A DNA stretch of 64,000 bases, taken from the NCBI GenBank assembly GCA_977020255.1, contig CDROCS010003649.1:62001-126000 (forward strand), given 5' to 3'. Source of the DNA: Obrimoposthia wandeli (taxonomy: Eukaryota). The notes beneath the pieces were generated by a model that was not told the DNA's origin, made no database searches, and saw nothing but the letters and a program-made list of their open reading frames with translations. The position numbers and the translations under genes were made by a program. Of this stretch, positions 14,210-32,867 are shown in pieces (positions within the stretch are counted from its first letter, which is position 1; every line of letters starts with the position of its first letter).

Positions 14210-14295
14210 TCCCAGATTAGTATAAATACTGTATGCATTTAGGCTTATCCCACAGAGCAAGTCTCTGACTTAATCTGCTAAAGATAATGCCTATG

Positions 14296-14330: not shown

Positions 14331-14433
14331 GCTTTTCAACGCTCATAAAATTGATTACGCTAGTCTTATAACGATCACAGCACATAACTGATTCACCCAC
14401 ACTGGAATCATTTATTTACTGTAATTGTCATTA

Positions 14434-14461
14434 TAATAGTTAATAGTTAATAGTTAATAGT
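14434..14461. repeat. Tandem heptamer (TAATAGT)x4
   Basis: taatagt taatagt taatagt taatagt read directly, ending 32 nt before the dnaG ATG. Confidence 0.9.
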
Positions 14462-14493
14462 CAATCATCTTCATACTCATTAGTTAGGTACAT

Positions 14494-16233: not shown

Positions 16234-16482
16234 TGGCTTGAAATATGATCCATTAAGCCCCATTTAAGATCTAACAAAAAGAGCCGAATTAAATCGGTTC
16301 AGAACGCTGAGTTGAAAGTTTTCGCCTAATATAACGTGATAACCGTTATATTTACGCGCATTTTGACCACAATAATTATACCAATAAGTAGAAAAAAGCA
16401 CCGTTTAGCACTATACTGCTTTGTTTGCGCAGTGCTTTTGCGTCTGTATCTTTGAACCACGTCACCGGAGTGGAAGTATTCT

Positions 16483-18315
16483 ATGGAATCCCCTCAATCA
16501 CAATTAAAACTTCTTGTAGCTAAAGGTAAAGAACAAGGTTACCTCACCTACGCAGAAGTAAATGATCATTTACCACAAGATATTGTGGATTCAGATCAGG
16601 TTGAAGATATTATTCAAATGATCAATGACATGGGTATTCAAGTGCTAGAAACTGCACCTGATGCAGATGACCTATTGATGGCAGAAAATACATCAGCACC
16701 TGATGAAGATGCCGCAGAAGCCGCAGCCGCAGCGCTGGCGTCTGTAGAATCTGAAATTGGTCGAACTACCGATCCAGTACGCATGTACATGCGTGAGATG
16801 GGTACCGTTGAGCTATTGACTCGTGAAGGCGAGATCAAAATTGCAAAACGTATTGAAGAAGGTATCTACGCTGTACAAACAGCTGTAGCAGAATACCCTG
16901 AAGCAATTAATTCGTTACTTGCTGAATATGATAAATTTCTTGCTGAAGAAACACGCTTAAGCGACATCATCACTGGTTTCATCGACCCAAATGCGGATGA
17001 TGTTGCACCAACAGCAACGCATATCGGCTCTGAAGTTCCAAAGAAAGAAGATGAGTCTGATTCTAGCGATGATGATGAAGAAGAAGAGGAAGAAGGCAAC
17101 AAAGGGCCTGATCCTGAAGAAGCAGCTGAAAAATTTGCCGAATTACGTAAATACCATGCAGCATTACTGAAAGGCATTAAAGATGACGGTTTAGAACACC
17201 CGAAAACGCGCCTACAAGTTGAAATGCTAAGTGAAGTATTCCGTACTTTCCGTCTGATTCCAAAACAGTTTGATCGCATTGTAAATAACATGCGTGACAT
17301 GATGGATCACGTACGTGTGCAAGAACGTCTTGTTATCAAGATGTGTGTTGAACACTGTAAAATGCCAAAAGCAGCGTTCGTTGAAGCATTTGCCGGTCAC
17401 GAAACTGACAGCACTTGGTTTGAAAAAGCACAACAATCAGCAGCACCTTATGCGCAAGCATTACAACGTATCGATTTTGACGTACGTCGTTGCATCAACA
17501 AGTTAAAATTAGTAGAAAATACGACAGGTCTGACTATTTCTCAGATCAAAAACATCAACCGTCGTATGAGCATTGGTGAAGCGAAAGCTCGTCGTGCGAA
17601 AAAAGAAATGGTTGAAGCGAATTTACGTCTAGTAATTTCGATTGCCAAAAAATACACTAACCGTGGTCTACAGTTCCTTGATTTAATCCAGGAAGGTAAC
17701 ATCGGTCTGATGAAAGCCGTAGATAAGTTTGAATACCGTCGTGGTTATAAATTCTCAACTTACGCTACATGGTGGATCCGCCAGGCAATCACACGTTCTA
17801 TTGCTGACCAAGCGCGTACAATTCGTATTCCAGTGCATATGATTGAAACAATCAATAAACTGAATCGTATTTCGCGTCAAATGCTGCAAGAGATGGGCCG
17901 TGAAGCAACGCCAGAAGAATTGGCTGAGCGCATGATGATGCCAGAAGATCGTATTCGTAAAGTATTGAAGATTGCTAAAGAGCCAATCTCAATGGAAACT
18001 CCTATCGGTGATGATGAAGATTCTCACTTAGGCGATTTCATTGAAGATACAACGCTTTCTTTACCAGTTGACGCTGCTACAAAAGATAGCCTTAAAGGCG
18101 CAACAGACGACGTTCTAGCAGGCCTAACAGCCCGTGAAGCGAAAGTTCTACGTATGCGTTTTGGTATCGATATGAATACCGACCACACTCTTGAAGAAGT
18201 GGGTAAACAGTTCGATGTAACGCGTGAGCGTATTCGTCAAATTGAAGCTAAGGCATTACGTAAATTACGTCATCCTAGCCGCAGCGAACAGCTACGTAGC
18301 TTCTTAGACGAGTAA
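16483..18315 (+). CDS. rpoD: RNA polymerase sigma factor RpoD (sigma70)
   Basis: Regions 1.1-4; [29 protein letters not shown]. Confidence 0.99.
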
Positions 18316-18344
18316 TTGAATCGTTAGATACTCTTCTGCATTAC

Positions 18345-18378
18345 AAAAACATCTGATGGCAACATCAGGTGTTTTTTT
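18345..18378 (+). terminator. Terminator after rpoD
   Basis: aaaaacatctgatg-gcaa-catcaggtgttttttt. Confidence 0.85.
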
Positions 18379-18566
18379 ATGCCTGCAATAAAATGAATAA
18401 TAATGTGCCTATTTATGAGCTCTAGCAGAACACGCAGTATCTTCGATGAATAATTGAACAGTTAGTTGGTTACTTGTCTAAGTTATTGAATATGACCTAG
18501 ACACACAGAAACTATACTTATATACTTTCTGCATCTTAAAGCGTCGTAAGAGCGTTTGAAAGATTA

Positions 18567-18643
18567 GGGCCCTTAGCTCAGTTGGTTAGAGCATCCGACT
18601 CATAATCGGCAGGTCCCCAGTTCAAGTCTGGGAGGGCCCACCA
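18567..18643 (+). tRNA. tRNA-Ile2 (anticodon CAU, lysidine type), ileX-like
   Basis: GGGCCCTTAGCTCAGTTGGTTAGAGC...ACTCATAAT...GTTCAAGTC...GGGCCCACCA; sits downstream of rpoD like E. coli ileX. Confidence 0.92.
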
Positions 18644-18651
18644 AATTTTAG

Positions 18652-18682
18652 AACACTTGATGGAAACATCAGGTGTTTTTTT
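18652..18682 (+). terminator. Terminator after tRNA-Ile2, near-copy of the rpoD terminator
   Basis: aacacttgatg-gaaa-catcaggtgttttttt followed by atgtctgcaataaa. Confidence 0.8.
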
Positions 18683-18970
18683 ATGTCTGCAATAAAGTCA
18701 TCCCAGTTTATTTCTGGTACTGGTGAATCATCTTCCCTTCCTTAGTATTACCTAAATAATCAGCAAGTCCTCCTCACCATAAATACCATTTAAAAATAAA
18801 ATAAGTCTAGTGACAGGAACGTCAAACACATTAATGCTCGGTACTGCCGCCGTCAGCAACAACTCATTAATGGAAAAGATTATCTGCAGGAATAATGTAT
18901 TGGAAAATAATTTAAGGCCTGACTAATACGGCAGACCCCTGTTATAAAATTGAGGCATTAATAAATGCCC

Positions 18971-19972
18971 CTAGTTTTTTACATTTGTACTTTCTCTCTC
19001 AATAAGAATGCCAGGTTCTAGTAAATATTCTTTTTCAGCATCAATATTATTATCAATTCGATTCATTAAGTCATCAACAGCACGCGCAGATATTTTACCT
19101 ATCGGTTGTTTAATTGTCGTGAGGCTGTAACTCAACCAAGATGACATTTCGATATCATCCACAGCTATAACCGCACAATCTTGTGGAATATGCACACCAG
19201 ATGCACGCAATCCATCCATCACACCTAACGCAAGAATATCTGTTGCACAGAATATAGCATCCGGATTTTCTGGTAATTTAATAATTTCATCCGCCGCTTT
19301 TAAGCCCGCATTAAAATTATATTTCGCATTTATATAGGCTGGAGTTGATGCGCCTCTTGCAGCTAATGTCCGAGAGAAGCCTTTCCAACGATAATCACTT
19401 GTTAATGTGCCAGGCTCACCACTAACATAAACCATTTTCTTTAAACCTTTGTCTAATAAATGATTGGCAGCTTGCTCACCAGCCAATATATTATCAAGAC
19501 CAACACTATTTGCATTTATGCCTTCGACATAACGGTTGATAAGGCAAAGATGAACACCGAATTTTTCACATTGAGCAAACGCGTGACTGGTCAATCGACT
19601 CGTTGCGATAATTAAGCCATCAGCTTGATATTCAATCGCTCTATTAATTGCACCATCAAGATCACCCTTTTGTATTGGGCTTAAAATAACTTGGCCATTA
19701 CGCTTTTGAACTTCTAAGGATAACGCTCGAACCTGAGCATCATACATAGGGTTGGATTCATCATCTAACGCAATAGCAATTAACCCTGAACGATTCGAAA
19801 TCAGACTCCGAGCAATTGCATTAGGTGAATAACCTAATTTTTCGGCTGTCTCTTTGACTATCTTTCTTTTTTTGTCACTAATGCTTGCTGTAGAGCTGAA
19901 AGCTCGGGATACCGTTGATTGAGATACGCCTAGCATTTTAGCGACATCTTTAGAGGTAACTTTAGGTTTAAT
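18971..19972 (-). CDS. LacI-family transcriptional regulator (probable ATT start at 19972; first ATG at 19936 lies inside the HTH)
   Basis: KVTSKDVAKMLGVSQSTVSRA HTH, YSPNAIARSL hinge, periplasmic-binding-like sugar domain. Confidence 0.9.
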   Translation of the reverse strand: MKPKVTSKDVAKMLGVSQSTVSRAFSSTASISDKKRKIVKETAEKLGYSPNAIARSLISNRSGLIAIALDDESNPMYDAQVRALSLEVQKRNGQVILSPIQKGDLDGAINRAIEYQADGLIIATSRLTSHAFAQCEKFGVHLCLINRYVEGINANSVGLDNILAGEQAANHLLDKGLKKMVYVSGEPGTLTSDYRWKGFSRTLAARGASTPAYINAKYNFNAGLKAADEIIKLPENPDAIFCATDILALGVMDGLRASGVHIPQDCAVIAVDDIEMSSWLSYSLTTIKQPIGKISARAVDDLMNRIDNNIDAEKEYLLEPGILIERESTNVKN

Positions 19973-20021
19973 AACGATTCTCCCTTAACAATTGATTATA
20001 TTTTTACTAACATTATCACAG

Positions 20022-20768
20022 TTATTCAGTTACTTGCATTCTCTGATTCTTAAAACCATCAATGATCATCTTCTGCTCTGAAGCTAAACCAAAAAAAGTC
20101 ACACCTAAAGCTGACCATTTTGGAATTAAACTAGCGTCTGCTATAAACATTCCCACTGGTTTCGCCGATTTTTTTGCCGCATCAATTATTTTTAAACTCG
20201 CATCAAATACTCGTTCGTCATTAACCGAATCTACATTATAGGCTACAGCTAAATCTACCTGCCCAATAAATAAAGCATCAACACCGTCAATCTCTGCAAT
20301 ACCATCAACATTAGTAACGCCTTCAGGATCTTCTATTTGCACAATAACCGTTGTTTTATTAGCACTATCTTTTAAATGTGAAGCCATTGTTTTACAAGTA
20401 TATTCTGCTGCTCTACTTGAACCAGCATAACCACGACCACCTTCGCCATAATGAGAATTTTTCACGATATTTTTGGCTTGTTCGGCAGTACATACGTGTG
20501 GAACAACAATACCATTAGCGCCACAGTCTAGCGCATTTAAAATGGTCGAAGGTAATGAGTTTTGAATTCTAACTAAAGACGGTAACGCTGTTAAACGTGC
20601 AGTCATAATACATAAATCTAAGGTTGCTCGATCAAACGGGCAATGTTCCGCATCAAAAATGACAAAATCCAACCCAGACAAACTAAGTATTTCAACAATA
20701 TGTGGATGTGGGGTTTTCATAAATGTACCAATTTGTTTTTCTTGTTTTAGTTGCTCTTTAAATTCCAT
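20022..20768 (-). CDS. HpcH/HpaI-family class II aldolase (2-keto-3-deoxy acid aldolase-like)
   Basis: Likely start MEFKEQLK; FVIFDAEH, GRGYAG, VQIED and IGQVDL motifs. Confidence 0.88.
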   Translation of the reverse strand: MEFKEQLKQEKQIGTFMKTPHPHIVEILSLSGLDFVIFDAEHCPFDRATLDLCIMTARLTALPSLVRIQNSLPSTILNALDCGANGIVVPHVCTAEQAKNIVKNSHYGEGGRGYAGSSRAAEYTCKTMASHLKDSANKTTVIVQIEDPEGVTNVDGIAEIDGVDALFIGQVDLAVAYNVDSVNDERVFDASLKIIDAAKKSAKPVGMFIADASLIPKWSALGVTFFGLASEQKMIIDGFKNQRMQVTE

Positions 20769-20998
20769 TTCAATATCTCTCATTATATTTTGCACTGGAA
20801 TGCAAAACTTAACATAAAAACACATTTTATATGTATATTTAATGTGACAAACATAGCAAATAATCGTTAAAAATCTAACTAAATTAAAACAAAACAAGTA
20901 TTACTTACACTTAAGACAAACAAAAACAACAACTTAAATCAAAAGCATTGACCACCGCCTAAAACTTGATATTTGTTACAAAGTTGTTTAGTGTTTAT

Positions 20999-21014
20999 TT
21001 GCATTCGTATCCAA
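20999..21014. promoter_or_regulatory. Candidate operator for the island LacI regulator
   Basis: ttgcattcgtatccaa, an imperfect palindrome with central CG, similar to the sites at 27532 and 27887. Confidence 0.55.
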
Positions 21015-21082
21015 AACGACTTTTAGCGTTGAAAGATATCTACCATTCATCACCTAAGATTCATACAACAGAGAGTTTATAT

Positions 21083-22375
21083 ATGACATATTTTATTAAA
21101 AACGGAATTGAACCTGAAGTTTCAGCATCAAATAATGAAAATGTACGCAATATCGTAGAAAACATTTTATCGAATATTGAAATAAATGGTGATGATGCCG
21201 TTAGAGAACTTTCCGAAAAATTTGATAACTGGTCGCCAGAGCAATTCCGACTAACAGAACAACAAATCCAGTTATGCGTAGATTCATTAGATGAACAAAC
21301 ACGTATTGATATTGAGTTTGCCCAAACACAAGTCCGTAATTTCGCTCAAATTCAACGTAACTCAATGCTTGATGTTGAAGTAGAAACAATCCCAGGCGTT
21401 ATACTTGGACATAAACATATTCCAGTAAGCAGCGTTGGTTGTTATATCCCAGGTGGTAAATACCCACTGGTTGCATCAGCACACATGAGCGTTCTAACAG
21501 CAAAAGTTGCTGGCGTAAAACGTGTAATCGCTTGTGCACCACCTTTTGATGGTAAGCCTAATGTTGCAATCGTTGCAGCAATGGCAATGGCCGGTGCCGA
21601 TGAAATTTATTGCATGGGTGGCGTACAAGCCGTTGGTGCAATGGCATTAGGAACAGAAACAATTGCCCCAGTAGATATGATCGTAGGTCCTGGTAATGCT
21701 TTTGTGGCTGAAGCGAAAAGACAATTATTCGGTCGTGTTGGTATTGATTTATTTGCTGGTCCAACTGAAACCTTAATCATTGCTGACGAGATAGGTTGTG
21801 ATCCTGAGCTAGCTGCTGCTGATATACTTGGTCAAGCCGAACATGGTTATAACTCACCTTCAATCTTACTGACTAACTCAGCAGACTTTGCACATAAAAC
21901 AATTGCTGAAGTGGCTCGCCAATTAACAATTTTACCAACTGCTGAAGTTGCCGCTAAAGCATGGGAAGACTATGGCCAAGTAATCGTTTGTGATACTTAC
22001 GCTGAGATGATTGAAGTCGCTAACGACTTAGCTTCAGAGCATGTTCAAGTAATGACTGAAGACCCACAATATTTCCTAAAACATATGGTTAATTTCGGTG
22101 CTTTATTCCTAGGTAAAGAAACAAACGTGTCTTACGGCGATAAATGTATTGGTACAAACCATACTTTACCAACGAACAAAGCAGCGCGTTATACCGGCGG
22201 TCTATGGGTAGGTAAATTTATTAAAACTTGTACATATCAACGTGTAACCGAAGAGGCATCATTGATGGTTGGTGAATATTGCTCTCGCCTATGTGCACTT
22301 GAAGGTTTTGCAGGACATAAAGAGCAAGCAGACATTCGTGTTCGTCGTTACAAAAAGCAAGCTGTAGAGGCATAA
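21083..22375 (+). CDS. Histidinol dehydrogenase-family NAD+ dehydrogenase, HpsN (sulfopropanediol dehydrogenase)-like paralogue
   Basis: Start MTYFIK after agagag; [42 protein letters not shown] motifs; not in a his operon. Confidence 0.85.
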
Positions 22376-22376
22376 C

Positions 22377-23111
22377 ATGAAAAAATTAGCATTAGTAACA
22401 GGAGGCAGTGGCGGGCTTGGCGCTGCTATCTGCAAGAAGTTAGCGGCAAGTGGCTACAATGTTATCGTCACATATAACTCGAATAAAGTAGCGGCAGAAT
22501 CTGTTTTAGCTTCTTTATCGGCAGGTGAGCATTGTATACATAAGCTAGAGATGACTGACTCTCAAGCAATATCAGCACTGGCAAAGCAGCTAGAACGTGA
22601 CAATCAAGATTTAGATTTATTGGTTAATTGCGCTGGTATGACGAAGTTTGTAGCGCATCACGATCTGGATGGATTATCTGATGAACTAATGGATCAAATA
22701 TTTAGCGTTAATGTGAGAGCACCATTTGCCATGGTACGTGCATTTCAGCCTGCGCTTAAGCGCACCAAAGGTTGTGTCGTTAATATTACCTCGATTGCAG
22801 CACAAACTGCGATGGGCAGTAACATTGCTTATTGTGCAAGTAAATCTGCAGTTGAAAACATGACACGTTCATTGGCAAGAGCGCTTTCACCTGACATTCG
22901 AGTGCTCGCTGTAGCGCCCGGTTTAGTTGATACCGATTTTGTGAAAGGTTTGGATAGCGATTGGCGTAATGCACAACAACAAGCAACACCATTACAACGA
23001 TTGGCGCTTGAAGAAGAAGTTGCCGACGCGGTGTTTGTTGCTGCTGACGTGATGACGTTTTCAACGGGCTGCACGATTCCAGTTGATGGCGGACGTCCAC
23101 TCGGCATTTAG
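22377..23111 (+). CDS. Short-chain dehydrogenase/reductase
   Basis: TGGSGGLG, NCAG, S..A, YCASK catalytic motif. Confidence 0.92.
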   Translation: MKKLALVTGGSGGLGAAICKKLAASGYNVIVTYNSNKVAAESVLASLSAGEHCIHKLEMTDSQAISALAKQLERDNQDLDLLVNCAGMTKFVAHHDLDGLSDELMDQIFSVNVRAPFAMVRAFQPALKRTKGCVVNITSIAAQTAMGSNIAYCASKSAVENMTRSLARALSPDIRVLAVAPGLVDTDFVKGLDSDWRNAQQQATPLQRLALEEEVADAVFVAADVMTFSTGCTIPVDGGRPLGI

Positions 23112-23145
23112 TTGCCAGCTTTAGCTATTTAATCAAGGATTTAAG

Positions 23146-24150
23146 ATGACGTTACAAGATAAAATGAATTCGTCGCTAGTACGTTACATGGAGCTTATTC
23201 CTGGAACGAGCGCTTTCATTGACGCGAGAACACCCGGCAGCGATCGCAAAGATAACTTTTGCATCATTGGTGCTGGCGTAGCAGAAAGCACTCGCCAACA
23301 TGTACATATTCGTGAGACAGCGGGCTTTAATATTGGTGCTGCAGGGCAACCTCCAGGTATCAAAAATTCGCTGCACTCTCACCATACTGCAGAATTATTT
23401 TTAGTCTTCAAAGGTAAGTTCCGTTTTTATTGGGGCAATGAAGGCGAAAACGAAGCAATATTATCAGCTGGTGATGTTATTTCGATACCCACTAATTTAT
23501 TTAGAGGCTTTGAAGTCGTTGGTCGTGATTATGGCTTTATGTATTCAGTTCTAGGCGGTGATAATTCTGGCGGCGGTGTGATTTGGCACCCTAAAGTAAT
23601 TACCGATAGTCAGCATTATGGTTTATTTTTAAAAGCTGACGGTACTTTAATCGACACGATCGATGGTGATGCAGAAGTATCAGATGAGCAACTTATGCCG
23701 TTATTAACTGCGCACGAAATGCAGCAGTTTGACCATTACAGCGCAGCTGACATGATGGCGTTTGTAGCCTTGAAAAAAGATTACAAAGCCACGCAAAACG
23801 ATTTTTCGCAAAGCGATTATCAACAGTTTGCATTAACAGGTCATCCGCAAGCGGGTTACGATTACCAAGTTAAAAGTGCTGATGACGTCAGTATCAACGC
23901 ATATAGTTTAAGTCAGGGTAATAGCATTCCAATGCATACCCGAACCGACAAACAAGTGTTGATTAACTTTGAAGGTGATACTGAAATTAGCATCGGAAAA
24001 GACAATGAGATCGCAACGGTACTATTAACCACAGGTGATGTTTTAAATATCCCTGAAGGTGCTGCGATTAGCTTAACCAATAAACGTGGTACTAGCTTTG
24101 TGTATTATATCTTGGGTAATGATCAACCTGCTTACCCAGAGACTGCATAA
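23146..24150 (+). CDS. Bicupin-domain protein
   Basis: N-terminal cupin HSHHTAELF...GDVISIPTNLFRGF and a degenerate C-terminal cupin (PMHTR...GDVLNIP). Confidence 0.75.
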   Translation: MTLQDKMNSSLVRYMELIPGTSAFIDARTPGSDRKDNFCIIGAGVAESTRQHVHIRETAGFNIGAAGQPPGIKNSLHSHHTAELFLVFKGKFRFYWGNEGENEAILSAGDVISIPTNLFRGFEVVGRDYGFMYSVLGGDNSGGGVIWHPKVITDSQHYGLFLKADGTLIDTIDGDAEVSDEQLMPLLTAHEMQQFDHYSAADMMAFVALKKDYKATQNDFSQSDYQQFALTGHPQAGYDYQVKSADDVSINAYSLSQGNSIPMHTRTDKQVLINFEGDTEISIGKDNEIATVLLTTGDVLNIPEGAAISLTNKRGTSFVYYILGNDQPAYPETA

Positions 24151-24890
24151 TGTTAGCCAATACCAAGCAATCAATACCTTTGCTTTTGGTACCAGGGCTG
24201 CTTTGCAATGAAGCGTTATTTGAGCCTATTTATAAGGAACTACCCGCTTGGGTAGTTCCTCGGTATATGCGCCTTAATAACAGCAACTCGACCAGTGAGT
24301 TAGCCAAGCATATTCTCAGAGATGCTCCCGCTAAATTTATTTTAGCGGGTTTATCAATGGGTGGTATTTTAGCATTCGAAATTTACAGACAAGCACCTGA
24401 AAGGGTTACAGGTCTTATTTTAATGGATACTAATGCTGCCAGTGAGAAAATAGCCGCTACCGAAAAAAGAAATGCCTTGGTAGATAAAGCGCAGGCTGGT
24501 GATTTTTCATCAATCACGCCGACCATTTTAATGCCTTATCTTATCCACCCATCAAGATTGCATGACATCGCGTTAACCTCGGCTATTACGGCGATGGCTG
24601 ATGATATCGGAGTCGAACATTTTGCCGCGCATGCACAAGCTCTAGCGACGCGTTTAGATAGCATTTCATTGCTGGCAAGCATCAATGTACCGACATTAAT
24701 TATTACCGGTAGCCACGATGCGCTATGCCCACGACAAAACCACTTAACCATGGCTGAGCACATTAATACTGTGTCTATGCATGTGATTCCAGAGTGCGGT
24801 CATTTATCGACAATGGAACAGCCACAGCTCGTTGGTCAACATATCAGAGACTGGTTAAATTATCATTATGATACAAGCACTACGCTTTAA
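24150..24890 (+). CDS. Alpha/beta hydrolase
   Basis: VPGLL oxyanion loop, GLSMGG nucleophile elbow, GSHD and CGH acid/His; overlaps the cupin stop codon. Confidence 0.9.
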   Translation: MLANTKQSIPLLLVPGLLCNEALFEPIYKELPAWVVPRYMRLNNSNSTSELAKHILRDAPAKFILAGLSMGGILAFEIYRQAPERVTGLILMDTNAASEKIAATEKRNALVDKAQAGDFSSITPTILMPYLIHPSRLHDIALTSAITAMADDIGVEHFAAHAQALATRLDSISLLASINVPTLIITGSHDALCPRQNHLTMAEHINTVSMHVIPECGHLSTMEQPQLVGQHIRDWLNYHYDTSTTL

Positions 24891-24912
24891 AACATCGTTA
24901 TAATATGAAGTA

Positions 24913-24950
24913 TAAAAAAGGCCGTTAACTAAGTTAACGGCCTTTTTATT
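24913..24950. terminator. Bidirectional terminator between the two convergent island operons
   Basis: aaaaaaggccgttaac-taa-gttaacggcctttttatt. Confidence 0.85.
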
Positions 24951-24959
24951 GTCAGTAAA

Positions 24960-25916
24960 CTATGACTCTATTTGTTGTAATATTTGCTTCCATACTGCGA
25001 TTTCATCATAGAAGGCAAACTCACGTCTAATCCCCCAAGGCCCGAACTCAGCGTGACAAATACCCATCACATATACATCGGCGTTAGTTGGTTGGCCAAA
25101 TGCGCCAAAGCCCTCATGCTTACCTTCAAGGCTCCAGCGTATCGCAGCTCTTGGAGACATGTTACCGCCCTCTAAGCCGATTTGATGATGTATTTTAAAT
25201 ATAGCATTGGGAAACGCAGAGCGTAATTGCACCCAAAAATGATCGATACCTGCATGTGACAGCACATTTTTACCACCAGCATACTCACCAATACATGCAC
25301 GATCATACGCTTGATTAATAACCGCGAAATTAGCCGCCATAATCGATTCTAATACTTCCGCATATTGGCTGCCCCAAGTGCTGTCATTACCTTTATTTTG
25401 ATAAGGACCTTGGATATCGTCTTTAGGTAAGAAAACCGCTTTGCTCTTCTCTGAGCCACCTTCATCGGCAATCAACTTACGTGCAAATTCTTTTGGTGTA
25501 TAACCCGACTGGCGAGCAATTGCGCCCTGATCTCGAATTAACCATTCGTCATCAATTTGGTTATTTTTAGCATGGCAATCGGCAATAATCCTAAATTTCA
25601 ATTTACTGCCCGTTTCACAATCGGTAGCCGTCGAAATAATACGGTGCGAAGAAAGTAATCCCTCTTCGGCTGAACCACTCCATATTACATCTTCACCAAA
25701 CAGTGTTCGGTCTGGATATCTGGCTAATACTTCCATGGTTTTGTTAATCACATCATCTTTACCGACTGCGATGCCCAATGGCGTACGAACAATAATATCT
25801 TTTGCATAATAATCATGCAGGGTATGTAACCCTCTGTCTTCCCAAATTTCTTTGGTGATCCCTAAAATATAATGTGGAAAATTGTTCCACTTAGGATCAA
25901 AGCCAGCTAATTTCAT
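24960..25916 (-). CDS. Tandem SnoaL/NTF2-like (ester cyclase family) domain protein
   Basis: LRSAFPNAIFKIHH...IRWSLEGKHEGFGAFGQPT in the C-terminal domain, plus an N-terminal NTF2-like domain. Confidence 0.75.
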   Translation of the reverse strand: MKLAGFDPKWNNFPHYILGITKEIWEDRGLHTLHDYYAKDIIVRTPLGIAVGKDDVINKTMEVLARYPDRTLFGEDVIWSGSAEEGLLSSHRIISTATDCETGSKLKFRIIADCHAKNNQIDDEWLIRDQGAIARQSGYTPKEFARKLIADEGGSEKSKAVFLPKDDIQGPYQNKGNDSTWGSQYAEVLESIMAANFAVINQAYDRACIGEYAGGKNVLSHAGIDHFWVQLRSAFPNAIFKIHHQIGLEGGNMSPRAAIRWSLEGKHEGFGAFGQPTNADVYVMGICHAEFGPWGIRREFAFYDEIAVWKQILQQIES

Positions 25917-25931
25917 TCGATTTTCCTTAAT

Positions 25932-26948
25932 CTAACGTGAAAAGTTACGATAACGTGCTTTATTAAACTCTCTCATTCTTGCTAATACATCGACGCCTAA
26001 CTGCTGATAAACGTCAAGAATGTCGACCAATACCCAGTTCTCTCGAATGACATTACCTTCACAGCGCCAAAAGTCTAGGCTTCGCATCGTGATTTTTTGA
26101 TTGGATGGCGCAATACCCAACCAACCTCCCCCTGAGACTGTCATTTCCATGCCAGGCCAAGCGGTAAAGGCAACATAATTATTATCCGAAAACAGATAAC
26201 CATTTCCTTCTTTGACTCTTCTGTTTGGTAGTGCATTTAAAAATGGTATTTGATGCCAGTTTCTAAAGCCACTAATACCACGGCAAGTACCAATGCCTGC
26301 AGGCCCATACCAAGTGCTATGTGGGTGCCAATATTGTTCTAACTGCATCGCTTCAACACCACCATTTGCATAAGCAGACAGTCCTGTAAGCATATTAATA
26401 ACCGTGTCTGAACTTGCCGCCGATAAGTCTGCAGAGCGAGATGTGTTTATACCATCTAAAGTGGCAGGTCCAGGGGCATGGCATTCACGTCCTAAACTAG
26501 GACTCATTGGCCATGCATTTGCCTGCATCATGACTTCTGGAATATCCCACAGCGATTGTATTTCAACAACCTGACCATCTTCAATATTGTAGAATTCATG
26601 AAAACGCATGAAAACTTGATGTCCTGTCGGTGGAATATCTAACCAAGGTTCTAAAAATGTACCGGTATAATAACCCGCACACCCAACCCAGTTTTTACCA
26701 TTAGCATGTCCTGATGTACGAATGTATGTACGTTTTTCCAGATCCGGTATCGCCATCAACAAAGGTTTATATACTGTGTCTAATAACGCACTTCTATCCG
26801 CTAACGTTTCAAAAGGGTAAGACATTTGAATTATCGCATCAGCACTTATATTTGCATCTATAAATGCCCTGATTGCAGCCTCATCAAAGTTATACATCAA
26901 TTCATTTAACTTATTAATTAAGCAATGATTGTTTAAATAATCAGACAT
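25932..26948 (-). CDS. Tandem SnoaL-like ester cyclase domain protein
   Basis: Likely start MSDYLNN; WLDIPPTG...FHEFYNIEDGQVVE and WLGIAPSNQKITMRSLDFWRCEGNVIRENWVLVD repeats. Confidence 0.8.
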   Translation of the reverse strand: MSDYLNNHCLINKLNELMYNFDEAAIRAFIDANISADAIIQMSYPFETLADRSALLDTVYKPLLMAIPDLEKRTYIRTSGHANGKNWVGCAGYYTGTFLEPWLDIPPTGHQVFMRFHEFYNIEDGQVVEIQSLWDIPEVMMQANAWPMSPSLGRECHAPGPATLDGINTSRSADLSAASSDTVINMLTGLSAYANGGVEAMQLEQYWHPHSTWYGPAGIGTCRGISGFRNWHQIPFLNALPNRRVKEGNGYLFSDNNYVAFTAWPGMEMTVSGGGWLGIAPSNQKITMRSLDFWRCEGNVIRENWVLVDILDVYQQLGVDVLARMREFNKARYRNFSR

Positions 26949-27483
26949 CCTTACCACCTTGATAAAGCGGGTTTTCCATACTGTCTTTGTGTTCCCAGCC
27001 ATGCCCAGAGAAAGGGTCTAAACCAAGTTGCATCATGACACTTGGAAAATCCACCATGACATAATTATCCACAATTTTACCGTCGACAACTTTCCAGAAA
27101 TCCATATATCGAATGATTACTTTTTTACCGGTCGGCGCTAATCCCATAAATGCACCACTGTGTATCGCTTCTTGACGACCAAATGCAGCGCACCATTCAC
27201 CTTCAGTTAACCTAGCTTCATCGATACAAACCTTATCAGAAAAAGCATCTTGGAAAGGTTGTTGCCAATTATTTTGAAATTCACTGAGATCTTTCTTAAA
27301 TCCACAACCTGCATTACCCATCCAACGAAATGATTCAGAAAAAAATCGGCCCATGCCGGCAATATCATGATCATTCAACCCATCAACCATTGAATCAATC
27401 ACCGCAATCGTTGCTGTGGTTTTGGTTAAATCATTGTTATTAGTAAGTTCGCCTTGCATTGGGCGGCTGTTTTTAAGATCCAT
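26941..27483 (-). CDS. Single SnoaL-like ester cyclase domain protein
   Basis: Start MDLKNS after GGAGGA; HSGAFMGLAPTGKKVIIRYMDFWKVVDGKIVDNYV. Confidence 0.85.
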   Translation of the reverse strand: MDLKNSRPMQGELTNNNDLTKTTATIAVIDSMVDGLNDHDIAGMGRFFSESFRWMGNAGCGFKKDLSEFQNNWQQPFQDAFSDKVCIDEARLTEGEWCAAFGRQEAIHSGAFMGLAPTGKKVIIRYMDFWKVVDGKIVDNYVMVDFPSVMMQLGLDPFSGHGWEHKDSMENPLYQGGKDV

Positions 27484-27531
27484 TAATCCTCCAGTGATAT
27501 ATGATTTTAATTTATTAACACCAAAACCACA

Positions 27532-27547
27532 TTGCATTCGAAGTCAA
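27532..27547. promoter_or_regulatory. Candidate LacI-family operator upstream of the SnoaL operon
   Basis: ttgcattcgaagtcaa. Confidence 0.45.
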
Positions 27548-27611
27548 AAGTGGTTTGGAGTTGTAATCTAGCAATTTTACATCATAAATAGATAATCAAA
27601 TCGCTTGGTTA

Positions 27612-27627
27612 TGTGATACCAGTCAAA
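27612..27627. promoter_or_regulatory. Candidate CRP site in the divergent SnoaL/symporter promoter
   Basis: TGTGA-taccag-TCAAA against consensus TGTGA-N6-TCACA. Confidence 0.5.
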
Positions 27628-27885
27628 ATCATTTATAGAAATAGTGATATCGACAATAAAACTTTCAGTTATTTAATCTTTAAAATTAAAAAAATCTTAT
27701 TAAAACATGCTTAAAATTGATAAACATCATTAAAACAGTCATTTTTCGAGACGGATGTATCATAAATGTTAAATAAAACAGATTCAACACCAAAAATAGA
27801 AACAATTAATTGACATATCTTCCCTGTAATTCAATTATCACTGTGCATTATTCATCACGACATGCTTTGTTGACCCAGTTTTGAT

Positions 27886-27903
27886 TTTGAATACGTATTC
27901 AAA
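27886..27903. promoter_or_regulatory. Perfect 18-bp palindrome, candidate LacI-family operator upstream of the symporter
   Basis: tttgaatacgtattcaaa. Confidence 0.6.
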
Positions 27904-27957
27904 TCACAGCAAAACGTTTGGCGATGAACTTATATCAAATATAAAGGATTGTAATAT

Positions 27958-29694
27958 ATGTATGAGTTTGGAATTTTAAATTGGAGTGTTCTTGGCGGTT
28001 ATATCGTCTTGACCCTTATTTTAGGGGCTATTGTCGGTAAGAAGGTCTCTTCCGCTGGTGAGTTTGCATTGGGTGATAAAACCATACCTTGGTGGGCGAT
28101 TGGTATATCCGTCGTGAGTACTTATGTAAGTGCGATGTCTTTTTTAGGTGGCCCAGCATGGTCTTATAAAGAAGGTCTATCTGTTATTGCAATACACCTG
28201 AATTACCCTCTGGTTATTCTATTTGTTGTCGCTGTATTTATGCCCTTCTTTTACAATACCGGCCTCACGTCCATTTATGAATATCAAGAACGACGATTCG
28301 GTAAAATATCTCGCTTAACTCTTTCAATTATATTTTTAATTAAGCAATCAATTAGCTCTGCAGCGGTACTTTACGCAACAGCCTTGATTCTTGAATTTAT
28401 CACCGGACTCGATGTTGGTTACTGTATTCTGATTGTAACTGTAATTGCCCTTGCATATACCATGATGGGCGGTATCGCGGCGGTAATTTGGACCGATGTA
28501 CTGCAAGCCGGCATTCTATTTATTGGTGCACTGATCATCTTCTACGCAGTCTGGAACGGCATGCCTGCGCCAATGACAGATGTAATGGCACAACTAAAAG
28601 CTGAAGGCATGACCCAAGCGTTAAATACCTCGATGAATTTAAGCGAAGTAACAACGGTTTGGGCTGGTGTGATCGCAATGACCATGTTCCATACGACTGT
28701 TTACGGTGGCAACCAGATGATGGTGCAACGCTGTATGGCAGCTAAAAACATGGGTGATGCGAAAAAATCTATGTTGATGATGGGTTATGTAGCCTTCTTT
28801 ATTTACTTTGTATTTATCTTATTAGGCATCTTCTTTAATGCTTATTACGAAGGTAAACCGTTTGATAATGGCAATACGATCATCCTAACTTATGCGAGTG
28901 AATATGGCATGCCAGGTTTGATGGGTATCATTGCAGCTGCAATCTTAGCGGCAAGTATGTCTAGCCTTGATTCTGCCTTCAACTCGATGGCAACGGTTTC
29001 GGTAGAGGATTTCTATAAGCGCTTCTACAAACAGAATGAGTCAGATGCACATTACTTAAAAGCATCAAGAGTATTTACATGTATTTGGGCAGTTCTGGTT
29101 ATCGTGCCAGCACTCATGTTTGCTTCGAGCACAGGTTCTGTTCTGGAAGTATTAAGTAAAGCTGGTTCGTACTTTGTAGGCGCTGGTTTCTGTATGTTTG
29201 TATTAGGTTTCTACTCTAAACATATTACCGAAAAAGGTTTGTTAACAGGTGTAGCAGCAAGCTTCTTTGCCATTATGTTTGTAGCAACAACAACAGACGT
29301 ATCATGGCCTTGGTACTGTGCCGTAGGTGTAATGGTTAATACTGTTGTAGCTTATGTTGCTAGTCTAGTATTAACGGGTAAGCAAACTGAAATGCACCTT
29401 TACACTGTAAAAGGTCAGCAAGCTGAATATGCTCGATTAAATAAACCAACAATGGAAAATGGTTGGTATTTAATTCCGGGTAAAATAGACAAAGCAAGTT
29501 ATGGTTTAATCGTTATGTTCTTTATGTCGTTGCTATTCTTATACGGTATTAATGAATTTGCAGACCAACCAGAAAACTTAATTCTCTTTGCTCAAGTTTC
29601 TGTATTTATTTTAGTTTCAACGGTAATTTCGTATTTTGTTAAGGTGTTCTTAAGCTCAAAAGAAAAAAGAAATCTGAGCTACGTAACAAAATAA
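27958..29694 (+). CDS. Sodium:solute symporter (SSS) family transporter
   Basis: WWAIGISVVSTYVSAMSFLG, YEYQERRFG, GGIAAVIWTDVLQ, AASMSSLDSAFNS motifs. Confidence 0.93.
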   Translation: MYEFGILNWSVLGGYIVLTLILGAIVGKKVSSAGEFALGDKTIPWWAIGISVVSTYVSAMSFLGGPAWSYKEGLSVIAIHLNYPLVILFVVAVFMPFFYNTGLTSIYEYQERRFGKISRLTLSIIFLIKQSISSAAVLYATALILEFITGLDVGYCILIVTVIALAYTMMGGIAAVIWTDVLQAGILFIGALIIFYAVWNGMPAPMTDVMAQLKAEGMTQALNTSMNLSEVTTVWAGVIAMTMFHTTVYGGNQMMVQRCMAAKNMGDAKKSMLMMGYVAFFIYFVFILLGIFFNAYYEGKPFDNGNTIILTYASEYGMPGLMGIIAAAILAASMSSLDSAFNSMATVSVEDFYKRFYKQNESDAHYLKASRVFTCIWAVLVIVPALMFASSTGSVLEVLSKAGSYFVGAGFCMFVLGFYSKHITEKGLLTGVAASFFAIMFVATTTDVSWPWYCAVGVMVNTVVAYVASLVLTGKQTEMHLYTVKGQQAEYARLNKPTMENGWYLIPGKIDKASYGLIVMFFMSLLFLYGINEFADQPENLILFAQVSVFILVSTVISYFVKVFLSSKEKRNLSYVTK

Positions 29695-29700
29695 TATATA

Positions 29701-29738
29701 AAACCCATCAACATTAGGTCGCTAATATTGATGGGTTT
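29701..29738 (+). terminator. Terminator after the symporter
   Basis: aaacccatcaacattag-gtcg-ctaatattgatgggttt. Confidence 0.75.
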
Positions 29739-29867
29739 ATTATCGATAACAAACAAGTTCGCGACCCAGAAAGTACATAGGCAACTACTGCCATTTTTTG
29801 GGTTCCACTTATGAAATCCATGAATCGTATGTAACGTCTTAAACAAATTGTATTTTATGGACTAAGT

Positions 29868-31103
29868 ATGCGAAGTTATAATAAATATATGTTCATTAAA
29901 AAAAATAATGTTGTTCATCCAGTAGTTGTTATTATTAGCATTCTACTTATAGCGAGCTGTCTTCGTGGGCCTATAACAAGTATTGCCCCAATTTTAAATA
30001 CTATATCGAACAATCTAACATTATCAGCAACAGAAGCAGGAATGCTTACGACACTACCACTCATTATCTTTGCTTTGTTTTCACCTCTAGCATCTAAATT
30101 GGCTCGAGAAATAGGCCTTGAGTCATCTTTAATGCTGGCTTTATTTACCATTGCGATTGGTATTTCAATACGCTCCGTAGGCTCAGTTTTTACTTTGTAC
30201 TTAGGGACCTCTGTCATCGGTATTGGCACTGCGATAGGTAATGTATTACTGCCTAGCTTTCTGAAACGTGACTTTCCTCATAAGCTCCCAACGTTAACTG
30301 CCACTTATGCATTAACTATGGGTATTGTCGCCACATTATGTGTAACGACCATGATACCAATGCTTAATCTAGCGGATAGCCTAAATATTACGATTATTCC
30401 AAATTGGGCATTCGCATTAACAGGAACGATCATACTGCCAATAATCGCTATTTTAATTTTGTTACCGCAACTATTTCATCAAACCAAGCCAGCTTCAGAG
30501 ATCCACAAAATAAGTAATAATAGTTATATCTGGTATTCTGCTGCGGCTTGGCAAGTTTCTGGTTTTTTAGCTTTTAACTCATTCATTCTATATGCGTTCA
30601 TTGCTTGGTTGCCAAGCATCTTAGTGAGTTATAACTATTCAGCTCATCAAGCAGGTTACATTCATGGCATTTTTCAATTAGCCTCAGCGGTTCCGGCCAT
30701 CGCATTAATCCCATTAATGGCGAAAGTCAAAGATAAGCGCCAGTTGAGTGTAATCATTACTCTACTTGCATTCATTGGAATAATAGGATTACTCTCGATG
30801 CATCAGCACGCTATTGTTTGGGTGTCTTTACTTGGGTTTAGCTGTGGTGGCGGATTTATTCTTGGATTATCATTTGTTGGATCATGTAGTCATAATGCTA
30901 ATCAGGCTGCTGCATTATCTGGTATGGCGCAATGTGTTGCTTACTTATTTGCAGCTACGGGGCCAATTATTTTCGGCTCATTATATGAAGTAACAAATAG
31001 TTGGGATATTCCATTAATACTTACTATAGGCATAAGTATTATTTGGGCTTATTTAGCAACTCAAGTAGGAAGAGCAATTTTGCATGCACCTTCCCTACAA
31101 TAA
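29868..31103 (+). CDS. MFS transporter, CynX/YeaN(NimT) family
   Basis: ASCLRGPITSIAP, GNVLLPSFLKRDFP, AAALSGMAQCVAYL motifs; about 12 TMs. Confidence 0.88.
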   Translation: MRSYNKYMFIKKNNVVHPVVVIISILLIASCLRGPITSIAPILNTISNNLTLSATEAGMLTTLPLIIFALFSPLASKLAREIGLESSLMLALFTIAIGISIRSVGSVFTLYLGTSVIGIGTAIGNVLLPSFLKRDFPHKLPTLTATYALTMGIVATLCVTTMIPMLNLADSLNITIIPNWAFALTGTIILPIIAILILLPQLFHQTKPASEIHKISNNSYIWYSAAAWQVSGFLAFNSFILYAFIAWLPSILVSYNYSAHQAGYIHGIFQLASAVPAIALIPLMAKVKDKRQLSVIITLLAFIGIIGLLSMHQHAIVWVSLLGFSCGGGFILGLSFVGSCSHNANQAAALSGMAQCVAYLFAATGPIIFGSLYEVTNSWDIPLILTIGISIIWAYLATQVGRAILHAPSLQ

Positions 31104-31273
31104 TACACAGACCTCTAACCGTCTCAGGAATCATAGTCCAAATTAAAACTAAAATCAGGCCTAATATCTAAGTCTGATATACACACATACAATAAAGCGT
31201 CTATCACATTTATCTTGAATTTAAGGTACACTCCTTCGCCTATCATATTTGTGTTTTAACGAGTTTCGAACCT

Positions 31274-32221
31274 ATGTCTACTGTCCGCGCTGCCCATGCA
31301 TCTCATATCGTATTACCAGAACACGTAACAGATAAGCCCACTGTATTTAGTTTTCTAAGCGATCACTTTAAACAGATTGATGCTTCGGTCTGGCAGCAGC
31401 GTATCATCGATGGCAAAGTACATTGGCGGGACGGTCGTTTAATTACCCTAGATTGTGCATATGTGCCACGAGAACGCGTGTATTATTACCGTGAAGTGGC
31501 TGTTGAGAAGAAGGTGCCTTTTGCCGAAAGCGTTATTTACGAAGACGACAACATCATCGTTGCTTATAAGCCTCATTTTTTAGCAGTAAGTCCTAGCGGT
31601 CAATTCGTGAATGAGTGTCTGGTTAACCGTCTAAGAATAAAAACAGGTATCGAAACACTGGTAACAGCGCATCGTCTTGACCGCGCCACAGCAGGACTCA
31701 TGCTGCTATGTAAAATCTCTGAGCAACGTAGTATCTACCATGACTTATTCAAACATGGCAATATCACCAAACACTACCACGCTATCGCTCGATTAACACC
31801 CGAGTTAAAACAACAGCATGATGAAGACAATCTGCAGCTACCGCTTAACTGGACAGTGAAGAACAGAATTGTTAAAGGCGATCCCACATTCACAATGCAG
31901 ATCGTAGAGGGGGAAGCAAACAGTCACTCGACCATCGAATTAATTGCTATTAAAGGGGAGTTTGGGTTATTCAAATTGTCGCCAATCACAGGCAAGACCC
32001 ACCAACTGCGTTTACATATGACCAGTTTAGGCATGCCATTGGTGAATGATCGCTTATATCCAACGCTGTTAGACCGATGCGACGATAACTTTCAGCAGCC
32101 CTTGCAGCTATTAGCCCAACAACTGAAATTTACCGATCCGGTCACGGGCATTGAACATGACATAACGACGAAAGCACTTGATATTAATGCGCTAATTAAT
32201 GGGACCGTCGATATTATCTAA
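31274..32221 (+). CDS. RluA-family pseudouridine synthase
   Basis: AYKPHFL, HRLDRATAG catalytic Asp, TGKTHQLRLH. Confidence 0.92.
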   Translation: MSTVRAAHASHIVLPEHVTDKPTVFSFLSDHFKQIDASVWQQRIIDGKVHWRDGRLITLDCAYVPRERVYYYREVAVEKKVPFAESVIYEDDNIIVAYKPHFLAVSPSGQFVNECLVNRLRIKTGIETLVTAHRLDRATAGLMLLCKISEQRSIYHDLFKHGNITKHYHAIARLTPELKQQHDEDNLQLPLNWTVKNRIVKGDPTFTMQIVEGEANSHSTIELIAIKGEFGLFKLSPITGKTHQLRLHMTSLGMPLVNDRLYPTLLDRCDDNFQQPLQLLAQQLKFTDPVTGIEHDITTKALDINALINGTVDII

Positions 32222-32626
32222 TTAGTTTACAGTGGAGTTTAAACCTTTCGCCTCTCTGGCTTTCTCTAAGCAACGAGATATTTTCATTTTAGAGACAGGT
32301 TTAACGAGATAATCAGTCGGCTGGAGTCTAATCACTTGCTTAACAGTGTTGATATTATTCTCACCCGTGACAATAAAAACAGGGGTGTTTTGTTGCTGTT
32401 TACGGACATACTCTAATACTTTTAAACCGTCGAGTTCTTCACGTAGGTTAAGATCTAGAAAGATATAATCAAATTGTTGTTTTGATAATAAATTCAGTGC
32501 CAGTGGGACATTATCCGCATACGTGACATTATCGCTATCCGCGTAGCATTCAATCGAAATCTTACGTACTAGCTGCGCAATTATTTGTACGATAACCTTA
32601 CTATCTTCAACAATCAGACATCTCAT
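32222..32626 (-). CDS. Single-domain response regulator (receiver only)
   Basis: CLIVED, FLDLNL phospho-Asp, VTG, YLVKP. Confidence 0.88.
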   Translation of the reverse strand: MRCLIVEDSKVIVQIIAQLVRKISIECYADSDNVTYADNVPLALNLLSKQQFDYIFLDLNLREELDGLKVLEYVRKQQQNTPVFIVTGENNINTVKQVIRLQPTDYLVKPVSKMKISRCLEKAREAKGLNSTVN

Positions 32627-32719
32627 TACTACCTCTTTTTGATTGTTATCAGAACATTAGCTCAGTATAGGTGCAAGTCAGTTAAAATGGGCTTTAATCT
32701 ACGCTATTTAATTCGAAAA

Positions 32720-32735
32720 TATGAAACTGATCACA
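32720..32735. promoter_or_regulatory. Candidate CRP site upstream of the receiver gene
   Basis: TATGA-aactga-TCACA. Confidence 0.4.
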
Positions 32736-32867
32736 TTTAAAATCAACATCTTAATGCTTTAAGCATAGCCCATATACTTTGCTTATTAAAAATCAATTAA
32801 ATAATATAAAAACGAATAAATCGACAGGCCTTCGACTGCAGAAGACCTGTACTAAACAGCAGATGAA

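Follow-up and report, generated by a model that had tools for sequence, protein, structure and literature searches.

A 64,000-nucleotide stretch of DNA (the window; contig CDROCS010003649.1, positions 62,001 to 126,000, of the Obrimoposthia wandeli assembly GCA_977020255.1) was analyzed for a ten-gene cluster at window positions 18971 to 29694, which an initial annotation had described as a complete island for the uptake and catabolism of one compound. The ORF (open reading frame) listing and family scans confirmed all ten genes with the domains claimed, and the gene spacing divides them into the four proposed transcription units. The first, on the minus strand, encodes a predicted HpcH/HpaI class II (metal-dependent) pyruvate aldolase (20022-20783, 253 amino acids [aa], Pfam PF03328 at 93.7 bits versus a cut-off of 25) and a LacI-family repressor (18971-19972, 333 aa, Pfam LacI and Peripla_BP_1/3); the outermost minus-strand gene is lacI and not, as annotated before, that of the aldolase. 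The second, on the plus strand, encodes a HisD-family four-electron alcohol dehydrogenase closest to HpsN (21083-22375, 430 aa), a short-chain dehydrogenase/reductase (SDR; 22377-23111, 244 aa, Pfam adh_short), a bicupin (23146-24150, 334 aa, assigned by family scans, motif, and an AlphaFold2 [AF2] model), and an α/β-fold hydrolase, probably an esterase or lactonase (24150-24890, 246 aa, PcaD-like by Pfam and NCBIfam at scores below the cut-off). The third, on the minus strand, comprises the genes for the single-domain SnoaL/NTF2-like protein SnoC (26941-27483, 180 aa, Pfam) and for dSnoB (25932-26948, 338 aa, Pfam) and dSnoA (24960-25916, 318 aa, Pfam SnoaL twice), of which the last two are tandem two-domain proteins. 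The fourth is a single plus-strand gene for a sodium:solute symporter (SSS; 27958-29694, 578 aa, Pfam SSF, TIGR00813 above the cut-off).

The starts of the aldolase gene (20783), dSnoB (26948), and SnoC (an ATG at 27483 behind a GGAGGA Shine-Dalgarno site) were corrected, and the hisD-like gene starts at the ATG at 21083, not at the TTG at 20966. The lacI gene starts with an ATT at 19972 (window 19970-19990, minus strand), six bases past the strong Shine-Dalgarno sequence AAGGGAGA. The frame upstream of its first ATG encodes helix 1 of the helix-turn-helix (HTH) domain (VTSKDVAKM...), which would be lost if translation began at the ATG at 19936. With the ATT start, the N-terminal HTH is complete, and a type-1 periplasmic-binding-protein-like sensor domain is present. 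This Shine-Dalgarno-ATT arrangement is conserved in Vibrio and Photobacterium, where the annotation starts at an internal ATG and thereby truncates the HTH. The unusual start codon may hold translation of the repressor low.

Relatives of the cluster were retrieved through the bicupin. A word search yielded 5,151 relatives, none of them named beyond "cupin"; a scan of one genome per species gave at least 593 genomes with a bicupin relative, and 80 loci were retrieved. Co-occurrence was counted by tblastn of the ten window proteins versus 82 loci retrieved through the bicupin. Matches were obtained for LacI in 60 of the 82 loci, for dSnoA in 59 (48-67% identity in the 24 orthologues compared), for the HisD-like protein in 57 (61-86% identity), for dSnoB and SnoC in 42 each (47-66% identity to alphaproteobacterial orthologues of dSnoB; 64-74% for SnoC in Alphaproteobacteria and a Pseudomonadales metagenome-assembled genome [MAG]), for the hydrolase in 41, for the HpcH aldolase in 13, and for SSS in six. 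The SDR was found in 44 loci by family clustering; spurious antisense ORFs that clustering gave in high-GC loci (family 7 and others) were disregarded. In gene maps, SAR116 (Puniceispirillum), Planktomarina, Marinovum, Roseibium, Oceaniovalibus, and others have the genes in one compact block; Vibrio, Photobacterium, and Endozoicomonas share a Vibrio-type arrangement. The same gene set was found in many Rhodobacterales and Hyphomicrobiales and likewise in Vibrio sp. EJY3. The genes thus recur together in other genomes, as a functional unit would; the original description as a marine route proved too narrow, since relatives also occur in lake and soil Hyphomicrobiales MAGs and, in reduced form, in Bacillus.

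Several members of the set are exchanged between lineages. Gammaproteobacteria have an aldolase of the HpcH type, whereas 27 alphaproteobacterial loci have an RraA-like one; the transporter belongs to the SSS, TRAP, or CUT1-type ABC systems; and in the Pseudomonadales MAG (L012) an amidohydrolase_2 protein resembling fuconolactonase replaces the α/β hydrolase. These functionally equivalent replacements support three steps of a pathway, namely those of the aldolase, the transporter, and the hydrolase. In 45 loci, a gene for a 377-aa MetE-like protein with an HxC...C zinc-thiolate motif lies directly behind that of the bicupin; its products are 54-82% identical to the SAR116 copy, most of them above 70%. 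In a Rhodobacter locus devoid of this gene (L079:8431-9835), the bicupin gene is immediately preceded by a gene for a B12-binding (corrinoid) protein and by an unassigned ORF of 269 aa. No MetE-like orthologue was found in the assembly containing the window or in three Vibrio/Photobacterium genomes, where only weak matches, probably to ordinary metE, were obtained. The absence of so highly conserved an alphaproteobacterial gene from Moritella and Vibrio makes it uncertain whether the window cluster is complete. In Bacillus sp. REN10 (L091), the bicupin, hydrolase, HpcH, LacI, and TRAP genes are kept and the hisD-like and SnoaL genes are absent; genes of the four-carbon acid-sugar kinase and FBP-aldolase families are present instead.

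Three operator-like palindromes lie in the two promoter regions. The LacI-type operator TTGCATTCGTATCCAA of the hisD-like operon (20999-21014) precedes the hisD-like gene by 60-95 nucleotides (nt), both in the window and, without a single difference, in eight Vibrio loci. Its core TGCATTCGTA was invariant in seven taxa (Moritella, four Vibrio species, Photobacterium, and Endozoicomonas) in an alignment of the intergenic region upstream of the hisD-like gene whose mean column identity is 51%. The perfect palindrome TTGAATACGTATTCAA lies 56 nt upstream of the symporter gene (27887-27902); its counterpart TTGGTTACGTATCCAA stands upstream of the SnoaL-symporter operon in Vibrio and Photobacterium. 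The third, the inverted repeat TTGCACTGGAATGCAA, overlaps the aldolase start (20790-20805) and has a counterpart TTGCAAAGGTATGCAA conserved in Vibrio loci. From the window alone, the proposal of shared palindromes would not stand: with at most three mismatches allowed, the 14-mer matched five times versus 4.7 times expected, which is chance level. It is their conservation in relatives, within otherwise diverged intergenic DNA, which argues that the palindromes are real and are the site of a shared regulator. In sequence, the sites at 20999 and 27887 show the palindromic form, the length (14-18 bp), and the central CG that are typical of operators of the LacI family, and the repressor would bind there. 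In Vibrio sp. EJY3, a second tandem SnoaL gene lies beside a CUT1 ABC transporter 5 kb from the main cluster (L001:15836-20996) and is the true counterpart of the window's dSnoB (60% identity). The same operator motif precedes this separate dSnoB gene and the transporter, which probably places the unit in the same regulon.

Between the two convergent operons, a bidirectional intrinsic terminator was identified at 24915-24947 (both strands). It consists of a perfect 15-bp hairpin with U-tracts on both strands, formed by flanking A and T runs, and folds with -20.7 and -20.5 kcal/mol on the two strands (z = -6.2 and -7.0; none of 200 shuffles folded as well), bearing out the central terminator that had been predicted. 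A further terminator hairpin (29701-29738, -19.8 kcal/mol, z = -6.3) stands behind the symporter gene.

The window is bacterial by content, with dnaG, rpoD, tRNAs, and one rRNA operon, and lies in an assembly of 1.35 Gb in 6,912 contigs. Its DnaG has an identity of 97% to the Moritella sp. F3 protein, versus approximately 55% to that of Vibrio. Taken together, gene content and DnaG identify the window, on sequence grounds, as a Moritella contig within a eukaryote-sized assembly, the source presumably being a symbiont, a commensal, or a contaminant. Near-identical DNA is also present in food and marine metagenomes.

The comparison with Moritella sp. F3 by blastn revealed a clean insertion of 12,574 bp (18697-31270) that contains the ten genes and one MFS gene. 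Window positions 14000-18696 correspond to 9527-14186 of the Moritella sp. F3 locus (L090) at 93% identity, and 31271-35000 to 14289-18017 at 91%, so that the 12.6-kb segment replaces approximately 102 bp. The genes of Moritella sp. F3 follow each other without interruption as rpsU-dnaG-rpoD-tRNA-pseudouridine synthase-response regulator-SSF; in the window, the insertion separates the tRNA gene with a CAT anticodon (18567-18643, plus strand), which marks its left edge, from the pseudouridine synthase gene. The tRNA lies directly behind dnaG-rpoD and is conserved in Moritella sp. F3. ARAGORN calls it Met(CAT); we presume from its place behind rpoD and its anticodon arm that it is an E. coli ileX-like tRNA-Ile2, and this probable identity is as far as the earlier naming of the tRNA holds. 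An island next to a tRNA is thus an apt description in a loose sense, with the insertion starting after the tRNA. No integrase or mobility genes were found in the island or its flanks, and no att-like direct repeats of the tRNA 3' end. The insertion has a G+C content of 0.39, and its flanks have 0.42 and 0.39. Identity to Vibrio proteins amounts to 74-86% for the cluster proteins versus 55% for DnaG; of the 201 Vibrionaceae species genomes sampled, no more than 16 contain an orthologous bicupin. The absence of the segment from Moritella sp. F3, its patchy distribution, and a Vibrio identity far above that of DnaG together point to an accessory block that was spread by horizontal transfer. The proposal that the ten genes are a single functional unit is upheld, as they co-occur over two proteobacterial classes, share a regulator site, and form a tRNA-adjacent insertion.

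Other elements were noted in and around the insertion. The MFS transporter gene within it (29868-31103, plus strand, Pfam MFS_1) has no homologue in 82 related loci. A near-identical terminator hairpin with tail occurs twice, behind rpoD (18345-18395) and behind the tRNA (18646-18696), and both copies are found in Moritella sp. F3. A second SSF symporter gene (32868-34304) is unrelated; it lies outside the insertion, does not belong to the cluster, and is kept in Moritella sp. F3 with a DUF997 gene behind it.

The HisD-like protein matched Cupriavidus HpsN (CpHpsN, 8v35) with 395 bits and approximately 50% identity, versus 270 bits for the best HisD, and also matched a marine R-DHPS dehydrogenase (DHPS, 2,3-dihydroxypropane-1-sulfonate). 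The equivalents of the catalytic S-E-H (Glu318/His319) and of G-D-K (Zn-binding Asp352, Lys353) are kept, the latter being invariant in the orthologues. These scores and the conserved Lys353 would fit a pathway for DHPS or another hps-type sulfonate, and the cluster had been likened to the core of the hps clusters. In HpsN, however, the final His126 of the motif G-R-Y-A/S-H binds the sulfonate, and HisD has G-S-A-P-L at this position (PMC11382572). The window protein has G-K-Y-P-L there, and all 47 of 47 cluster-linked orthologues have G-K-[YF]-P-[LM]; a true HpsN motif was present in locus L035 in a protein of only 44% identity. As the sulfonate-binding His is missing in the whole orthologous group, DHPS is unlikely as substrate. 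SuyAB, Xsc, CuyA, and a sulfite exporter were not found within the island or its flanks. We consider a sulfonate pathway highly improbable, and the resemblance to the hps core superficial. The HisD-like group appears to be a separate specificity group, predicted to oxidize a primary alcohol beside a carbinol to the acid in a pocket that does not accommodate a sulfonate. Five alphaproteobacterial loci (L013, L020, L028, L069, and L077) contain a second HisD-family paralogue near the cluster, of approximately 46% identity and with the motif G-G-R-[FY]-P-L-L-S. In L013, L020, and L028 at least, it immediately adjoins an amidase-signature enzyme; the amidase occurs in eight loci.

The bicupin was modeled with AF2 at a pLDDT of 93. 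Its N-terminal barrel contains cupin motif 1, G(X)5HXH(X)3-4E(X)6G, as G71...H77-S-H79...E83...G90, with His77, His79, Glu83, and Gly90 invariant in 61 sequences. In motif 2, the histidine that would be the fourth ligand is replaced by an invariant Arg120, which suggests a 2-His-1-Glu metal site; the C-terminal barrel has no conserved ligands. The nearest folds (Z = 20-22) were oxalate decarboxylase at the top and the C-C-cleaving quercetin, salicylate, and gentisate dioxygenases, followed by HEPD and MPnS at Z = 19. A sequence search of solved structures gave nothing useful for the bicupin or dSnoB.

For the aldolase, all equivalog models remained far under their cut-offs, and the nearest solved structures were GarL and HpaI, besides YfaU. 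The alphaproteobacterial RraA-like aldolase reached 27 bits with the LigK model, far below the cut-off of 304. The best solved match of the hydrolase was a bacterial esterase, with a weak match to PcaD, and no NCBIfam model reached its cut-off for the SDR.

These assignments bear on an aromatic pathway that would cleave the ring of a substituted phenolic acid, as in the gentisate, gallate, or protocatechuate 4,5 routes, with the bicupin as the dioxygenase and with a lactonase and a CHA/HpaI-type aldolase acting after it. The bicupin's fold neighbors include gentisate and salicylate 1,2-dioxygenases (Z = 20-21), the hydrolase is PcaD-like, HpaI- and RraA-like aldolases are typical of meta-cleavage, and a possible demethylase is present. 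The bicupin, though, does not match the NCBIfam model of gentisate dioxygenase and has an Arg for the third His, and LacI-family control, a CUT1 sugar-type ABC system, and SSS suggest carbohydrate-like substrates. HisD-type enzymes, moreover, need a vicinal hydroxy or amino alcohol and not a benzylic one. Aromatic ring cleavage is thus regarded as very unlikely.

A SnoaL domain with an NTF2-like fold was indicated in agreement by Pfam, the AF2 model, and fold matches. The dSnoA model (pLDDT 94.7) comprises two fused NTF2 barrels like those of Lsd19 and MonB, polyether epoxide-opening enzymes, and dSnoA has many invariant Arg, Asp, Glu, and His residues. In the protein atlas, dSnoA was found only as "putative ester cyclase / NTF2 family". 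The Moritella protein lacks seven residues (25590-25620, in the loop past ...ATDC) that are present in 24 of 24 aligned orthologues.

The Pfam name "SnoaL-like polyketide cyclase" and the structural neighbors Lsd19, IdmH, and SdnG, all biosynthetic cyclases, could be read as signs of a small polyketide-type biosynthetic cluster, or the ten genes might be neighbors by chance. No polyketide synthase genes were found in the island or related loci, nor does the cluster contain a nonribosomal peptide synthetase or a tailoring set; its uptake transporter, sugar-type repressor, and pyruvate aldolase speak for catabolism instead. A gene set that is kept across classes with interchangeable uptake systems makes both biosynthesis and chance scarcely credible.

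The transporters give some indication of the type of substrate. The solved structures nearest to SSS were SiaT (sialic acid) and SMCT1 and SMVT (monocarboxylate and vitamin carriers), ahead of vSGLT. The carboxylate-binding Arg135 of SiaT, examined as a sign of an anionic substrate, is not conserved and aligns with a Ser in SSS. The cluster-linked TRAP binding protein of Oceaniovalibus was nearest to the solved 4p47, 7bbr, 4pdh, 4p9k, and 4pdd, several of which were reportedly crystallized with sugar acids, D-erythronate included.

A four-carbon or related sugar acid unit of the tetronate type, for instance the L-threonate or D-erythronate that arises when ascorbate or sugars are oxidized, would fit part of these data, as would a bigger sugar acid or a lactone from which such a unit is released. 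The HpsN-like enzyme would oxidize the tetronate, a carboxylate isostere of DHPS, to a dicarboxylate; on chemical reasoning, the main difference between DHPS and either trihydroxybutanoate or 3,4-dihydroxybutanoate is that the latter have COO- in place of SO3-, and the enzyme keeps Lys353 and loses the sulfonate-specific His. In agreement, SSS is nearest to anion carriers, the TRAP binding protein is near ones reportedly solved with sugar acids, the top structural neighbor of the bicupin is oxalate decarboxylase, the best solved match of the hydrolase is an esterase, and Bacillus sp. REN10 pairs bicupin, hydrolase, HpcH, and TRAP genes with that of a four-carbon acid-sugar kinase family protein. 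Against this, a tetronate pathway would leave five NTF2 domains and the MetE-like enzyme without a role, and Arg135 of SiaT is a Ser in SSS. A tetronate is regarded as a possible but unlikely substrate.

The MetE-like and corrinoid proteins suggest a substrate from which an alkyl (methyl) group can be transferred, at least in the Alphaproteobacteria. Methoxylated C7 cyclohexenone cyclitols, i.e., mycosporine-like amino acids, 4-deoxygadusol, or gadusol, would be such compounds, and for them a chemically sensible role can be conceived for every gene. The NTF2 proteins would detach the amino-acid (imine or enamine) substituents or open the ring, the MetE-like protein, where present, would move the O-methyl group to a thiol, the bicupin would cleave the reductone, and the HisD-like enzyme would convert C(OH)CH2OH to C(OH)COOH. 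A CHA-type aldolase would finally cleave a 4-carboxy-4-hydroxy-2-oxoadipate-like product to pyruvate and oxaloacetate. The putative Zn-thiolate alkyltransferase (HxC...C) that adjoins the bicupin in 45 loci and the corrinoid protein found there in one locus agree with this scheme, as does, by a weak match, the RraA-like family, which includes the tertiary-carbinol-cleaving CHA aldolase. The photic-zone and alga- or coral-associated hosts (SAR116, Planktomarina, Vibrio coralliilyticus, and Endozoicomonas) would also fit, and literature searches turned up no catabolic pathway for these compounds. The scheme is nevertheless purely deductive and connects the compounds with the cluster only indirectly; the MetE-like gene is missing from Moritella and Vibrio, and LacI, the CUT1 ABC system, and the sugar-acid-like TRAP binding proteins equally fit plain sugars or sugar acids. 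We regard it as quite improbable. If it were true, it would be the first catabolic route for these abundant sunscreens of algae, corals, and cyanobacteria.

On balance, the cluster is probably a horizontally acquired, LacI-repressed set of operons for the import and degradation of a single small organic compound, other than DHPS and most likely carbohydrate-derived. LacI control, the CUT1 and TRAP systems, and the swap to a lactonase-like protein suggest a carbohydrate-derived acid, lactone, or cyclitol, and the lack of a kinase gene in the ten-gene cluster suggests a non-phosphorylative route. A polyhydroxy acid, lactone, or cyclitol with a -C(OH)-CH2OH end is the most likely substrate, and pyruvate the most likely end product of the pathway. 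When the substrate is absent, the LacI protein would sit on the three palindromes and keep all four units off. The symporter would take up the compound together with Na+. The three NTF2/SnoaL-like proteins could carry out cofactor-free acid-base steps, such as ring opening or retro-aldol cleavage, isomerization, and hydrolysis or dehydration at a carbonyl. The bicupin, with its predicted 2-His-1-Glu metal site and conserved Arg, may catalyze a metal-dependent C-C cleavage or rearrangement that gives a 2-oxo acid skeleton, and the α/β hydrolase may open an ester or lactone. The HpsN-like dehydrogenase, whose catalytic residues are conserved, would oxidize the primary alcohol beside a carbinol to the carboxylate at the expense of two NAD+, and the SDR would adjust one hydroxyl or keto group. 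Finally, the class II aldolase would cleave a 4-hydroxy-2-oxo acid to pyruvate and a small oxo-acid or aldehyde. Contigs from metatranscriptomes (two marine runs of one study) that are 97-99% identical to the window cover the SDR end, the bicupin, the hydrolase, dSnoA, and dSnoB, and are compatible with expression at sea by a close relative. Raw RNA reads of organism B (X22, X23) included none from the stretch, an outcome that speaks neither for nor against expression.

Several observations weigh against this interpretation. The order of the steps is guesswork, and no enzyme of the cluster reaches an equivalog cut-off. Fold searches with both AF2 models gave only generic bicupin and NTF2 neighbors and no functional assignment. 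The gamma- and alphaproteobacterial versions of the SDR, LacI, and hydrolase are only 28-38% identical and are thus perhaps not strictly orthologous, and since Moritella and Vibrio lack the MetE-like gene, the two versions may act on different, related compounds. Contigs from RNA libraries can, furthermore, include DNA.

Full-text literature searches retrieved no paper that names these families together and, among approximately 8.4 million papers, none with both "SnoaL" and "histidinol dehydrogenase", and a 2026 review on cyclitols contains no passage on C7 cyclitol catabolism. The homarine hom operon was considered as a match and rejected because its families differ. In line with the initial annotation, which had called the route undescribed, no matching described pathway emerged from these searches; the pathway, the enzyme combination, and the HpsN-like specificity group appear to be undescribed, while a repressor-controlled catabolic island as such is ordinary. 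The full gene set occurs in the abundant surface-ocean SAR116, Planktomarina, and other Rhodobacterales as well as in alga- or animal-associated Vibrio, Photobacterium, and Endozoicomonas. This breadth and the recruitment of three types of high-affinity uptake systems suggest that the compound is common in the environment. The cluster would add a new specificity class inside the HpsN/HisD family and catabolic roles for NTF2/SnoaL proteins and a 2-His-1-Glu bicupin, and the conserved operator and its repressor would provide a ready biosensor for finding the compound. Elsewhere in the window, ARAGORN gave an odd 92-nt "tRNA-Cys (aca)" at 43251-43342, adjoining a tRNA-Asp.

With respect to its genomic setting, the cluster resembles tRNA-linked genomic islands in being a strain-specific 12.6-kb insertion after a tRNA that carries an accessory metabolic trait and has a patchy distribution and foreign affinity. 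It differs from them in having neither integrase nor mobility genes nor a direct repeat of the tRNA end, and in its flank-like G+C content.

Among catabolic systems, the hps genes hpsN, hpsO, and hpsP with their regulator in Cupriavidus pinatubonensis and Ruegeria pomeroyi share with the island a dehydrogenase, closest to HpsN, that is followed by an SDR and has a regulator nearby; the equivalents of the catalytic Glu/His, Asp352, and Lys353 are kept in the island's enzyme. The island, however, has neither the sulfonate-binding His126 motif nor a desulfonating enzyme, and hps clusters have no counterpart to its three NTF2 proteins, bicupin, hydrolase, and aldolase. The protocatechuate 4,5-cleavage/gallate pathway (LigAB, LigI, LigU, LigJ, and LigK) proceeds through a comparable sequence of dioxygenase, lactone hydrolase, isomerase/hydratase, and an aldolase giving pyruvate and oxaloacetate, and the alphaproteobacterial versions of the cluster contain an RraA-like aldolase. 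All enzyme families but the aldolase differ, however, regulation and transport of the island are of the carbohydrate type, and the match to LigK is below the cut-off. The non-phosphorylative sugar-acid routes (L-rhamnose, LRA1-4; glucarate/galactarate, GarL) likewise combine a dehydrogenase, a lactonase-type hydrolase, and a class II pyruvate aldolase with a sugar-type regulator and transporter, and do so without a kinase. In contrast to these routes, the island has NTF2 proteins and a bicupin in place of an enolase-superfamily or IlvD-type dehydratase, and a HisD-type enzyme, which they do not include.

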